In this document: positions 20,475 to 26,500 of the stretch, in pieces
Numbering within the stretch: position 1 is the stretch's first letter
Layout of the letters: the number at the start of each line of letters is the position of its first letter
Origin: Podarcis bocagei
Taxonomy: Eukaryota
Assembly: GCA_964188305.1 (NCBI GenBank)
Contig: OZ076887.1
Length of the DNA stretch: 64,000 bases
Direction: 5' to 3' (one strand)
Program-made: the position numbers and the translations under genes
Notes under the pieces: model-generated
The model's input: the letters and a program-made list of their open reading frames with translations, nothing else
What the model was told of the DNA's origin: nothing
Databases searched by the model: none

Positions 20475-22449
20475 GATGCTTCACTCATCAGTCGTTCAAC
20501 TACAGTGCATGGATAATCTTAGTGTGTTGTTTGAAAACCGGGCTTGTGATTTAACTTTCTTCAGACTAACCAAGATTTGTCCTGTGATTTACAGTTCATG
20601 GAGAACTAAACCACAAGCCAGGGTTTGGACAACATGCTAAGGCAAATCATGCTAGTAAATTTAACAAGAAGGCTCATTCCTACTATTCTAAGAGGTACAA
20701 AAGTGCTTTGATATTAGGAACTGAACTGCTGCTGCAGTCTTTAGGACAGATTGCAAGAGGAAAGGAAGTGGTCCACCACTCTTCCACGCCCTAAGAAAAT
20801 GCATTACTTTTTCATGTTAGGATTTCTCAGAATGTTGGAGCAGCAGTTCCAATATTTGCTCCTACCTCAGTTCACGGAGTAGGCAGGCTTCCTTGTACTG
20901 TCTGAAGCACAACATGCTCTTCTATTAGTCTTGAGAGTCTCAGCCCAATACTGTGCTAAGCAACCTCTTCACAATAGCAGGGAGGATTCTGATGGTAGAA
21001 TTGTTTATAAATGTTTCAGTATCCATTTTGGATTCGGTGGAGGCCATTGAAAAGTTATTTGGTGTGAAAACTGTTCATAGAATATTCTGAAATAAACATT
21101 GCTGAATTAGAACTGTGCAACTGCCTCATAGATTATGCAGTTTCATCTTGGAAAAGTAATATAAACACAGTGGGCTCACTAATTTCTACGGGTATTTACA
21201 ATTGCAGCCTTACCTAAAAATCTTGAAAGCCCAGAATTAAATAGCATGTAGTGTCTGTCACTTGCCCCACAATAATAAGTAACTGATTGTTCCCTCCCGC
21301 TACTACATGGTCATAGGAAATATGTGTTATTTATTAAGATACGTAGCATTTCGAGTGACTATTGAGCAAGACTTTGTGATAATGAACTGAGCAGTCAGCC
21401 TTAGTCACTTTGTCCCCTTCAGAATAAAGCCAGGCCTGGTCTGATGCAAAGTGGCGATGCCTCACTTGGATATGAAACTCTGACAGAGGTGCTGCCTTTG
21501 GCATCAATAACTCAGCACTGCTTCCATCTCTTTGATTTTTCTAAGTGATTGTTACAGCAAATACTGAAGATAGCATGACATTTTGAAAGAGTGAGTTAAT
21601 TTTAGTATTCTAACACACACTGCTGCATCCTCCATTCCTGCCACTATTGATTAGCTTCATATAGGAGTGAGGTATTGTACGGAGCCTGGCTCTCTACGCT
21701 TAGAACACCATAGTGCTACTCGGAGTGGCTTATTTAAATGCCAAAATGGTGGCAGTTCACTGAAGGAGGGCAGTTGGCAAGGCAGAGCCACAACAGCAGT
21801 ACTGAGGCAGTCGGTGGAATCAGTACAGAGCAAGCTGATGCTAATTGAGCTTTAATCTTTGGCCATTTTATTCTTGCTGTTGCTTTCAACATCTCTTTCT
21901 TTTCATGTATAAATCAATATACATACTTAGTTAGTCCCAAGTAAGAACAAATAATATTTATTTTTGGGTGGTTGTATTTTTCTGATAGGCACTGAGCCAC
22001 CTGTGTTTGGCATGGGAGGAAATGATGCTTGTTTTTAGATGGGAAGGGATGGAAGACAGTCTCTTTTGCAAATTTAATTTATCTATTTCACCTGTTTATA
22101 TATTGCTTAATCTCTGAAGTTTATAAGTAGTGTATGTAAAATTACAAAAAAACTCAGAGTGAATAAAATCAATTAAAACTTAATCACAAAAGCATAAAAC
22201 TTCCTTATTGTCTGCTGAAATGGAAAGGTCTTTGTCAAACATCTGACATTCAACAGGGAGGTGACTTGTAATGTATTATTTCTGCTTTGATTCTTTGGAT
22301 AGTTGTTTGGCGCTCTGCTAGCACCTTATACTGCATTCCTCTTCCCAGCAGATATTTAGAATCATAGAATCATAGAATCATAGAATCATAGAGTTGGAAG
22401 AGACCACAAGGGCCATCGAGTCCAACCCCCTGCCAAGCAGGAAACACCA

Positions 22450-25371
22450 TCAGAGCACTCCTGACATATGGTTGTCAAGCCTCTGCTTAAAGACCTCCAA
22501 AGTAGGAGACTCCACCACACTCCTTGGCAGCAAATTCCACTGTCGAACAGCTCTTACTGTCAGGAAGTTCTTCCTAATGTTTAGGTGGAATCTTCTTTCT
22601 TGTAGTTTGGATCCATTGCTCCGTGTCCGCTTCTCTGGAGCAGCAGAAAACAACCTTTCTCCCTCCTCTATGTGACATCCTTTTATATATTTGAACATGG
22701 CTATCATATCACCCCTTAACCTCCTCTTCTCCAGGCTAAACATGCCCAGCTCCCTTAGCCGTTCCTCATAAGGCATCGTTTCCAGGCCTCTGACCATTTT
22801 GGTTGCCCTCCTCTGGACACGTTCCAGTTTGTCAGTGTCCTTCTTGAATTGTGGTGCCCAGAACTGGACACAGTACTCCAGGTGTGGTCTGACCAGAGCA
22901 GAATACAGTGGCACTATTACTTCCCTTGATCTAGATGCTATACTCCTATTGATGCAGCCCAGAATTGCATTGGCTTTTTTAGCTGCCGCGTCACACTGTT
23001 GGCTCATGTCAAGTTTGTGGTCAACCAAGACTCCTAGATCCTTTTCACATGTACTGCTCTCAAGCCAGGTGTCACCCATCTTGTATTTGTGCCTCTCATT
23101 TTTTTTGCCCAAGTGCAATACTTTACATTTCTCCCTGTTAAAATTCATCTTGTTTGTTTTTGCCCAGTTCTCTAATCTGTCAAGGTCGTTTTGAAGTGTG
23201 ATCCTGTCCTCTGGGGTGTTAGCCACCCCTCCCAGTTTGGTGTCATCTGCAAATTTGATCAGGATGCCCTTGAGTCCATCATCCAAGTCGTTGATAAAGA
23301 TGTTAAATAAGACCGGGCCCAAGACAGAACCCTGTGGCACCCCACTAGTCACTCTTCTCCAGGATGAAGAGGAACCATTGATGAGCACCCTTTGGGTTCG
23401 GTCAGTCAGCCAGTTACAAATCCACTGAGTGGTAGCAGAGTCAAGACCGCATTTTACCAGCTTCTTTACAAGAATATCATGGGGCACCTTGTCAAATGCC
23501 TTACTGAAATCAAGGTAGGCTATATCCACTGAGTTCCCTTCATCTACCAGGCTTGTAATTCTGTCAAAAAATGAGATCAGGTTAGTCTGACATGACTTAT
23601 TTTTCAGAAATCCATGCTGACTATTGGTGATCACAGCATTCCTTTCTAGGTGCTCACAGACTGTTTGCTTAATGATCTGCTCCAGAATCTTCCCTGCTAT
23701 TGATGTCAGACTGACTGGGCGGTAATTATTTGGGTCCTCTCTTTTCCCCTTTTTGAAAATAGGGACAACATTTGCCCTCCTCCAGTCTGCCGGGACTTCG
23801 CCTGTTCTCCAGGATTTCTCGAAGATGACTGCCAGTGGTTCTGAGATCACATCTGCCAGTTCTTTTAATACTCTTGGATGCAGTTCATCTGGCCCTGGAG
23901 ACTTGAATACATCTAAACTAGCCAAATATTCTTGTACTGTCTCCTTAGTTATTCTGGGCTGTGTTTCCTTTGCTGAATCATTTGCTCCAAATTCTTCAGG
24001 TCGGGCATTGTTTTCTTTATCGGAGAAGACTGAGGCAAAGAAGGCATTGAGGAGTTCAGCCCTTTCTGTGTCCCCTGTTTGCATTTCACCATCTTCTCCT
24101 CTGAGTGACCCCACTGTTTCTTTGTTCTTCCTTTTGCTACGAACATACCCATAAAAGCCTTTTTTGTTGCTTTTAACCTCTCTAGCAAGCCTGAGTTCAT
24201 TCTGTGCTTTAGCTTTTCTGACTTTGTGTCTACACGTGCTGGCTATTTGTTTGAATTCCTCTTTGGTGGTTTCCCCCCTTTTCCATTTTTTGTACACATC
24301 CTTTTTTAATCTTAATTCAGTTAAAAGTTCTTTAGATAGCCACCCTGGCTTCTTTAGGCACCTTCCATGTTTCCGTCTCAATGGTATTGCCTGACGTTGT
24401 GCTTTTACTATCTCCCTCTTAACAAACTCCCAGCCATCATGAACTCCCTTTCCTTTTAGTATTGCTGTCCATGGGATCTCACCCAGCACTTCCCTAAGTT
24501 TTATGAAGTCGGCTTTCTTAAAGTCAAGAAATTGAGTCCTAGTATGCTTGGCTGCTCCTTTCCGCTGTATAGTAAACTTCAGAAGAGCATGATCACTCGC
24601 GCCTAATGATCCTTCCACTTCTACCCCACTAACCAGGTCATCAACATTGGTTAGGACCAGATCTAAAATGGCTGTTCCTCTTGTTGCTTCTCCCACTTTC
24701 TGGACAATGAAGTTGTCTGCAAGGCCAGTGAGGAATCTGTTTGACCTTATGCTCTTGGCTGAGTTTGACGTCCAACAAATATCCGGGTAATTGAAGTCCC
24801 CCATTACTACTATCTCCCTTCCTTTTGCATGCTTGGCCATCTGTTCCAGGAAGGCATCATCTATGTCCTCCGTTTGGCTTGGGGATCTATAGTAAACTCC
24901 CACAATGAGGTCTCTGTTATTCTTCTCTCCCTTAATTTTGACCCAAATGCTCTCACATTGGCTTTGAGGTTCTAAATCTTGGATCTCTTCACAGGTATAC
25001 ACATCCCTGACATATAACGCCACTCCTCCTCCTTTCTTGTCTGGTCTGTTTCTCTGAAATAGATTGTATCCCCCCATTATTACATTCCAATCGTGGGACT
25101 TATCCCACCAGGTTTCAGTGATGCCTATTATGTCATATTTAGTTTGCTGTACCAAGAGCTCAAGCTCATCTTGTTTATTTCCCATGCTTTGCGCATTAGT
25201 GTACAGACATTGAAGTCCATTAATCATTCCCCCGTGTCTCTTATTTAAGGATTTTTTCCTCCCACCACTAGGTCCGCGTGCTGTTTGCTCCATTTGGTCT
25301 ATGACATTTGGATGATCATCTTCATTAATTGATAGACTCCTACCTTCAGGAGCACTGTCTCCCTCCCCCAC
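22450..25371 (-). CDS. CR1 ORF2: AP-like endonuclease + reverse transcriptase (973 codons, uninterrupted)
   Basis: Endonuclease motifs [34 protein letters not shown] motifs [35 protein letters not shown]. The annotated start is a GTG. Confidence 0.96.
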
Positions 25372-25376
25372 ATTAG

Positions 25377-25943
25377 TCAGTTTAAAGCCCTCCTGATGAG
25401 GTTTCTGAGATTTTTGGCAAAAACATTCCTCCCAACCGTTGTGAGGTGCAGCCCATCACTTGCCAGAAGTCCATCTTCAAGAAACTGCAGTCCGTGATCT
25501 AAGAATCCAAACCGTTCCTGTTTACACCACTTGCGAAGCCAGCTGTTCACTTCCACTATTTTCCCCTCTCTCCCTGGGCCACGTCGTTCAACTGGGAGGA
25601 CAGATGAGATGACAATTTGTGCATTTAGTTGCTTCAATTTCCTGCCGAGAGCCTCGTAGTCTCTTTTGATCTTCTGGAGGCTATTGCTTGCAGTATCATT
25701 GGTTCCCACATGAACCAAGAGGAAGGGGTATTTGTCAGTGGGTTTTATGATTCCTTGCAGTCGTTCAGTTACATCTTGGATCTTAGCCCCGGGGAGACAG
25801 CACACTTCCCGAGACATCTTGTCAGGCCCACAGATCACTGCTTCTGTTCCCCTCAGTAGGGAATCCCCTATCACCACTACACGCCTCCTCTTATGTTTGG
25901 TCGGGGTTCTTCCGTGAGCTGTCCGTTCCAAGGTCGCCTGCAC
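25377..25943 (-). CDS. CR1 ORF1 C-terminal SGNH/GDSL esterase domain (5' truncated)
   Basis: GDSL block [17 protein letters not shown] and DGLHL motifs typical of CR1 ORF1p; ends ...IRRALN*. Confidence 0.92.
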
Positions 25944-26500
25944 ATTCCCTAAGGACTGTGCTAGCTGTTCACTCCAGCAAGAGAATTGGGCTCAGTTTCT
26001 AGGAACATTGGTCCAGCCTGCGTGACTCTGCCCTGTATGTCTTGTGGTGGAATGCTGTTTTAGCTGTTCCATAAGGACAGCAAGAGTAGAGCCGGATTGT
26101 TAATCTCAAGTGTTTGTTTACTTTGATCTTCAGCTGTTATGACTGTCAACAAGACATTTACAGAAAGATCAAACATCTGCAATAATTTTCCAGCTTTGGC
26201 CTCTTGCCTGAAATATAGTCTTTCAGTATCTGCTTGTCTGCTTTGTTTGTGATCATCATTTTTCCCTATTTGGGCAACTGTTAAGAGAGTTACTATTTCT
26301 GGGGATTCTGTGGCAAAGCCCTTGAATGGCAGGATGAATGTCTTGCAGCAATATCACACATCACTTTTTATTAACCTTTATTGTCATGCTGTGTAATGAT
26401 ATGTCATGTCTGTAAACCAAGACAATTTGAAATGCCTTTTTTATTCCCTTATATTTTTACATGAATGAATTATATATCATGGCTGTCTGCCTCAATCTAG

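Follow-up and report, generated by a model that had tools for sequence, protein, structure and literature searches.

A conserved, phased slippery heptamer at the end of ORF1 suggests programmed -1 frameshifting in CR1-group LINEs

CR1-group long interspersed elements (LINEs) probably express their second open reading frame (ORF2) by a programmed -1 frameshift located where ORF1 terminates, which would yield a fusion of the ORF1 esterase with the ORF2 endonuclease (EN) and reverse transcriptase (RT). The argument starts from a CR1-type LINE on the minus strand of a 64,000-nucleotide stretch of Podarcis bocagei DNA (assembly GCA_964188305.1, contig OZ076887.1), hereafter the window, and extends to its relatives across jawed vertebrates. 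In these elements ORF1 closes on the heptamer U_UUA_AAC, which is correctly phased for a -1 slip and conserved; ORF2 follows in the -1 frame and in some lineages has no AUG of its own. On this comparative evidence we put the probability of programmed frameshifting at roughly 75%. CR1 is the dominant transposable element in birds and crocodilians as well as in turtles and snakes, and its presence in vertebrates is ancient. How LINE ORF2 is translated is a long-standing question that, to our knowledge, has been answered experimentally for only a few elements, such as L1 and SART1.

On the minus strand of the window, ORF1 ends AGG GCT TTA AAC TGA, and the heptamer TTTAAAC (25386..25380) stands in X_XXY_YYZ phase. 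Read in the -1 frame from the heptamer, the sequence is TTT AAA CTG ACT AAT GTG GGG GAG, which is the ORF2 frame. This frame is open from 25455, has its first in-frame ATG at 25293 and, counted from the GTG at 25371, runs for 973 codons to a stop at 22452-22450. The first-pass annotation of this DNA had described a phased heptamer ahead of the ORF1 stop and an ORF2 frame open well upstream of its first ATG; re-reading the positions and frames bore out both statements. The G-rich run and the GCTCCT/AGGAGT stem that it placed downstream are likewise present in the sequence (Table 1).

To place the junction among its relatives, ORF1 homologues were identified in turtles, frogs, lizards, crocodilians and metagenome contigs, with further ones in birds and in more fishes. 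A profile search gave 5464 ORF1 relatives, with ray, skate, sawshark, sturgeon, eel, snake and swallow among the named members; the matches listed (150 of the 5464) are all close CR1-type ORF1s, L2 and invertebrate relatives lying beyond the reach of the search. Junction DNA was retrieved for 14 loci by exact protein look-up and for 80 metagenome loci by the peptide pattern VCCLPGARIR. Because this pattern lies far from the junction, the metagenome loci are not biased toward the heptamer; most come from one host-contaminated sample and represent at least five bird-type CR1 subfamilies. The resulting 73 distinct junctions cover the lizard window, Varanus, three turtles, a dendrobatid frog, the bird-type subfamilies, ray, skate, sturgeon and eel-type fish.

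TTTAAAC is exact in 65 of the 73 junctions, and the other eight carry single substitutions, as expected of decaying copies. T occupies -7 in every junction (73/73), where it closes any of eight codons: GCT, TCT, ACT, GTT, TAT, GAT, GGT and CAT. A stop codon directly follows the heptamer in 72/73 junctions, and its identity is free (TAG 54, TGA 13, TAA 5). The fish junctions read GGT TTA AAC TAA in the ray, GTT TTA AAC TGA in the skate, CAT TTA AAC TAG in the sturgeon and TAT TTA AAC TAG in the eel type. At the protein level, a C-terminal LN ends most full-length ORF1 proteins; an alignment of 17 ORF1 proteins has just five invariant columns, and the terminal L and N are two of them. The letters of the putative shift site are conserved in related elements from sharks to birds.

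We compared the terminal codons with synonymous sites elsewhere in the 3' halves of 20 ORF1s sharing less than 80% protein identity. The terminal Leu is encoded by TTA in 19/20, and TTA makes up 11% of the Leu codons in these genes; the 14 other conserved Leu columns use four to six codons each, with a major-codon share of 0.32-0.65. Similarly, the terminal Ala is GCT in 17/17 ORF1s, against a major-codon share of 0.31-0.56 at other Ala columns, and the terminal Asn is AAC in all 20, against 13/18 at the other conserved Asn column. The heptamer is far above chance, because its synonymous positions are conserved across jawed vertebrates, and this control argues that protein constraint, codon bias and shared ancestry fail to explain it.

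The relation of the two frames is conserved as well. Of the 58 loci with a detectable EN, about 46 have ORF2 in the -1 frame, and this frame is mostly free of stops; loci with ORF2 in other frames mostly have stops in the linker between heptamer and EN, that is, they are decayed. Synonymous conservation of the heptamer and a kept -1 relation, two properties that the first-pass annotation wished to see checked, are both found in relatives. The linker occurs in at least 11 lengths (33, 48, 53, 55, 59-62, 70-72, 76 and 91 codons) with the -1 frame kept throughout. Accepted insertions and deletions have therefore all been multiples of three, which argues that reading of the linker starts at its 5' end and covers all of it. 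In a frog element that is intact, ORF1 is open and so is the -1 frame, over 973 codons counted from the heptamer, and no Met precedes EN; in a softshell-turtle element the -1 frame is also open for 973 codons. In two bird-type loci (L006 and L007) and in most copies of the main subfamily with a 33-codon linker, the stretch from the heptamer to the first EN strand likewise lacks a Met. Such AUG-less elements have their first Met as the final residue of the invariant C-x-Y-T-N-A-x-S-M block of EN. Since this Met sits inside the block, initiation there would lose conserved residues. A search of the Protein Data Bank (PDB) with the window EN sequence gave no match, and an EN profile gave weak matches to L1-EN structures (E 0.004) that begin past the first strand; the argument about the catalytic Asn therefore rests on the invariant TNA block and not on a structural alignment.

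These observations bear directly on the strongest competing explanation, that ORF2 is made as a separate protein through termination-reinitiation or through leaky or non-AUG initiation of the kind seen in L1 or SART1, with the block of TTTAAAC, stop and G-run serving as a reinitiation signal. We regard this as unlikely, though it is the best of the alternatives. L1 translates its ORF2 in an unconventional way that needs no AUG, and SART1 relies on an overlapping UAAUG (PMC3708506; PMC5009743); the stop that abuts the motif in nearly every junction would suit such a signal, and so would the well-placed AUG of the window family at 25293. CR1 resembles these systems in having a bicistronic LINE mRNA in which ORF2 expression would be coupled to the end of ORF1 (PMC3708506, PMC5009743). 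However, L1 and SART1 make separate ORF1p and ORF2p and need no slippery heptamer, and CR1 lacks a UAAUG-type overlap. In the junctions compared, no restart codon is conserved at the ORF1 stop or in overlap with it; linker AUGs vary in position and are absent in several lineages. Moreover, a reinitiation signal needs no phased X_XXY_YYZ heptamer with X fixed across eight codons, and a linker that keeps the -1 frame through many changes of length points to translation entering it at its 5' end.

We turned to the sequence downstream of the heptamer, measuring conservation in ungapped register across 20 non-redundant lineages. Positions +2 to +10 are conserved only at 0.35-0.65, G occupies +11 to +15 in 0.85-1.0 of the lineages and +18 to +21 in 0.65-0.85. 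In the -1 frame, +11 and +14 fall on third codon positions, and the codon at +9 to +11 varies at its first two letters; this pattern of conserved G at third positions argues for a constraint on the RNA and not on the peptide. The G-run starts exactly 10 nt after the heptamer in 50 of the 73 junctions and 9-12 nt after it in 61. The layout of site, spacer and element looks like a frameshift cassette, whose stimulator, if it has one, would appear to adopt no classical fold. Pairing of the G-run with the next 70 nt, scored with RNAduplex against shuffled sequences, gave a mean z of -0.17 (n=25) and no significant partner. G-quadruplexes stimulate frameshifting in synthetic constructs (PMC5009743), and ViennaRNA with its quadruplex option predicts one in only 2 of 20 lineages, which does not support such an element here. 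Separately, about 6% of the depth of a DNA contig from run X5 lacks one G of the five-G run near the shift site, at window position 25365. None of the RNA reads there (51 and 37 in two runs) lacks this G, and the DNA variant is probably copy variation or homopolymer error.

A G-run conserved at the nucleotide level without structure could also belong to a cis-acting RNA or DNA element with no role in translation, such as a site for ORF1p or ORF2p binding, for packaging or for regulation, its likeness to a slip site being coincidental. LINE RNAs do have protein-recognition elements, the known ones lying in the 3' tail (PMC4176376). We consider this explanation improbable, somewhat more so than separate initiation, as it needs three coincidences (a canonical heptamer, in the right phase, at the start of a -1 ORF) and leaves translation of ORF2 in AUG-less lineages unexplained.

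The third alternative holds that the heptamer is kept only because ORF1p needs a C-terminal Ala-Leu-Asn, aided by codon bias or shared ancestry. The invariance of LN at the protein level fits it, and yet it is very hard to sustain: synonymous positions are fixed at the terminus and vary freely wherever else in these sequences Leu or Ala is conserved, eight different residues (A, S, T, V, Y, D, G, H) precede Leu with T always the third base of their codons, TTA is a minor Leu codon in these genes, and endings in CTN-AAY or GCV-TTA occur in none of the 73 junctions, save for single-hit variants expected of decaying copies.

We also searched RNA reads for evidence that the frames are joined before translation. 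The LINE family is present, nearly identical, in sequencing runs of about ten related organisms, and two bulk RNA-seq runs span the junction continuously in both orientations, with 37-51 reads at informative sites. Some copies of the family are transcribed, which has no bearing on translation. Neither run contains a joint or an inserted or deleted letter at the heptamer at 37-51x, a depth that leaves room for events below a few percent; within that depth, the frames are joined by neither splicing nor transcriptional slippage. As for read variants, only the best-supported sites are listed, with 44 more besides, so that a heptamer without listed variants is a weak observation, which we do not use as evidence. 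Joining at the RNA level followed by conventional translation of a fusion thus has very little going for it beyond a splice-site-like sequence in turtle linkers, the more so as polymerase slippage, which has been described on runs of about nine (PMC5009743), needs longer runs than T3 and A3. The turtle sequence is AGGTAAGTG, shared by sea-turtle and softshell-turtle linkers about 35 nt past the ORF1 stop (L002:16170-16185, L004:4595-4610); it is a near-perfect match to the 5' splice-donor consensus, and the lizard sequence differs there, with no splice in the lizard RNA reads.

Several results weigh against programmed frameshifting, some of them concerning a stimulatory structure. The first-pass annotation had coupled the frameshift to a possible weak pseudoknot. 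The core of that proposal has strong comparative support in synonymous conservation, the kept -1 frame and the AUG-less lineages; its structural part, a stimulator formed by GGGAG/CTCCT and GCTCCT/AGGAGT pairing, is not supported, as no conserved or unusually stable fold was found. Folding of 120 and 97 nt downstream of the heptamer, which include the proposed stem or pseudoknot, gave z scores of +1.35 and +1.27 against shuffles, with tools that do not predict pseudoknots. A conserved hairpin was sought with RNAalifold in eight lineages, and the only helix returned was of 5 bp, at -1.3 kcal/mol and with broken pairs. Fourteen lineages folded singly spread from z -1.66 to +1.44, with no consistently stable fold. 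The G-run, for its part, has no pairing partner and at 10 nt lies beyond the usual 5-9 nt. The annotated stem, which begins 26 nt downstream of the heptamer, does not occur in the alignment of relatives; the GCTCCT/AGGAGT hairpin is probably specific to this copy or family and irrelevant to frameshifting. A 3' stimulatory element is common at -1 sites and not universal. Other points concern the site itself and the start of ORF2. A sawshark ORF1 protein (P0217, Pristiophorus japonicus, represented in UniRef only, without DNA) ends in EELN, which is incompatible with T at -7, because Glu codons cannot end in T. The window lizard family, turtles and some bird sub-lineages have AUGs in the linker, at positions that are not conserved; the one at 25293 is flanked by A at -3 and by G at +4, so that independent initiation there is possible. 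Finally, Alisch 2006, as cited in PMC3708506, indicates from L1 that translation of a LINE ORF2 can do without a frameshift, and indeed without any AUG.

We favor programmed frameshifting, which could proceed as follows. Most ribosomes would decode Leu UUA and Asn AAC, reach the abutting stop and release ORF1p. A fraction would slip one base back on U_UUA_AAC, their tRNAs re-pairing with UUU and AAA, and would read the -1 frame through the variable linker into EN and RT. The product would be an ORF1p-ORF2p fusion made in fixed ratio to ORF1p, like retroviral Gag and Gag-Pol. The conserved G-run 10 nt downstream probably stimulates the slip, perhaps as a linear and possibly protein-bound element and not as a hairpin. 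That ribosomes shift at this site, with some efficiency and with help from the G-run, is what we infer from the pattern of conservation.

Tandem slippage on X_XXY_YYZ and gag-pol frameshifting in retroelements are established (PMC5009743). Like the gag-pol sites of retroviruses and long terminal repeat (LTR) elements and like coronavirus ORF1a/1b, the CR1 junction has a heptamer at the end of the upstream ORF, with letters identical to those of coronaviruses, and the polymerase ORF in the -1 frame (PMC5009743, PMC8499926). As in gag-pol, a fixed ratio of the structural or accessory protein to the RT-bearing fusion would be expected (PMC5009743, PMC8499926). In those systems, however, a pseudoknot or hairpin lies 5-9 nt downstream, in contrast to the CR1 junction, for which no conserved structure was found and which has a G-run at 10 nt; furthermore, the 0-frame stop of CR1 abuts the heptamer and the element is a non-LTR LINE whose ORF1 encodes an esterase and not a capsid. 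Among LINEs, the ORF2 (APE-RT) of Dictyostelium TRE5-A and TRE3-A is stated to need a -1 frameshift (PMC5911963), which gives the principle a precedent. These elements belong to a different LINE clade and a different host kingdom, whereas CR1 is vertebrate-wide. The spacing of the G-run recalls the arterivirus C-rich motif bound by nsp1beta and PCBP and the 2A-bound element of cardioviruses, conserved elements that lie farther from the shift site than a classical pseudoknot; the arterivirus motif is, in addition, a linear, unstructured stimulator (PMC5009743). The CR1 motif is G-rich rather than C-rich, its role is a putative one and it has no known binding protein.

A more far-reaching version can be entertained tentatively, although we rather doubt that it holds in full. 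All esterase-ORF1 CR1-group LINEs of jawed vertebrates might make ORF2p only as a trans-frame fusion, using a cassette of undescribed design more than 400 million years old: U_UUA_AAC, an abutting stop, a free 7-nt spacer and an unstructured G-run that would act through a bound protein (of the host, or ORF1p) or through direct contact with the ribosome and not through an RNA fold.

A full-text literature search turned up no account of frameshifting in CR1; Haas 1997 and Kajikawa 1997, the founding papers on CR1, were outside its coverage, and an earlier remark there is possible. CR1 is not mentioned in a large recoding review that discusses LINE ORF2 expression (PMC5009743), and neither an overlap nor a frameshift is mentioned in a 2026 survey of CR1-group elements, in Metcalfe & Casane 2014, in Suh 2014 or in Lee 2009. 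Odon 2013 states that the ORF2 translation mechanism of two-ORF non-LTR elements "is not clear". The conserved slip site offers a concrete and cheaply testable mechanism for translation of CR1 ORF2, and would explain the many CR1 ORF2s that have no start codon. A Gag-Pol-like ORF1p-ORF2p fusion, as predicted, would account for cis-preference and stoichiometry. For annotation, CR1 ORF2 would be modeled from the heptamer and not from the first ATG. A G-run that acts at a fixed distance without structure could represent a new type of frameshift stimulator.

The window copy is itself 5'-truncated at about 25958, inside ORF1 (Table 1). Beyond this point the reads and contigs of all four runs examined depart from the window and run on into another sequence, which they share. 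Upstream of 25943 the ORF1 frame is full of stops, and no ATG precedes the esterase domain; the N-terminal part of ORF1 and the 5' untranslated region (UTR) are missing, and ORF2 is fully open. Truncated and preceded by stops, this copy is unable to express ORF1 normally, and its signal is an inherited fossil. A search of the window with the junction pattern, allowing three mismatches, found no second copy. The element has an APE-type endonuclease followed by RT in ORF2, an SGNH/GDSL esterase in ORF1 and an octamer 3' end instead of poly(A), as expected of the CR1 group. Octamer 3' tails have been described as typical for CR1 (PMC2612034), and an esterase ORF1 is the sole identifiable ORF1 type of the CR1 and L2 lineages (PMC13343379). 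A place in the CR1 clade, as against L2, is suggested by its nearest ORF1 relatives, which are in turtles, birds, lizards and frogs, where CR1 dominates; the fish loci may be CR1 or L2.

Table 1. Features of the CR1-type LINE and its ORF1/ORF2 junction in the window
Feature	Position	Strand	Basis or remark
CR1-type LINE insertion	22358..25958	minus	ORF1 interrupted by 5' truncation, ORF2 intact, 3' tail present
ORF1 remnant, 188 codons + stop, without ATG start	25377..25943	minus	frame and domain scan
GDSL/SGNH esterase domain of ORF1	~25431-25799	minus	PF13472, E 3.4e-10
Putative slippery heptamer T_TTA_AAC, in ORF1 phase	25380..25386	minus	sequence and relatives
ORF1 stop codon TGA, abutting the heptamer	25377..25379	minus	sequence
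Variable 7-nt spacer CTAATGT	25370..25376	minus	+2 to +10 weakly conserved
G-rich element GGGGGAGGGAG, beginning 10 nt past the heptamer	25359..25369	minus	candidate frameshift stimulator
Local hairpin GCTCCT-gaaggt-AGGAGT (arms 25353-25348 / 25341-25336)	25336..25353	minus	predicted fold
-1-frame linker, heptamer to endonuclease; in-frame ATGs 25293, 25227	25218..25379	minus	
ORF2 frame entered from the heptamer, 978 codons + stop	22450..25386	minus	
EN domain of ORF2	~24586-25197	minus	Exo_endo_phos PF03372, E 7e-18
RT domain of ORF2	~23101-23751	minus	RVT_1 PF00078, E 2.5e-35
3' terminal octamer microsatellite (ATGATTCT)x4	22358..22389	minus	read directly; ends the 3' UTR

The database records of these ORF1 esterases carry some misleading public names. 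Among six of them (P0047, P0044, P0005, P0314, P0078 and P0215) are Varanus proteins called 'Replicase polyprotein 1a' and 'Platelet-activating factor acetylhydrolase IB subunit gamma' and a terrapin protein called 'NUBP1 isoform'. Some are assigned to bacteria (Pseudomonas aeruginosa, Labedella endophytica) or bear a contaminant flag (Acipenser), a sign of host DNA in the assemblies concerned. Among the metagenome loci L010-L089 (JGI Ga0065711, Ga0181612), one environmental metagenome has many contigs, up to about 80 kb long, that carry the bird-type CR1 subfamilies described above, and its contamination by vertebrate host DNA is heavy.

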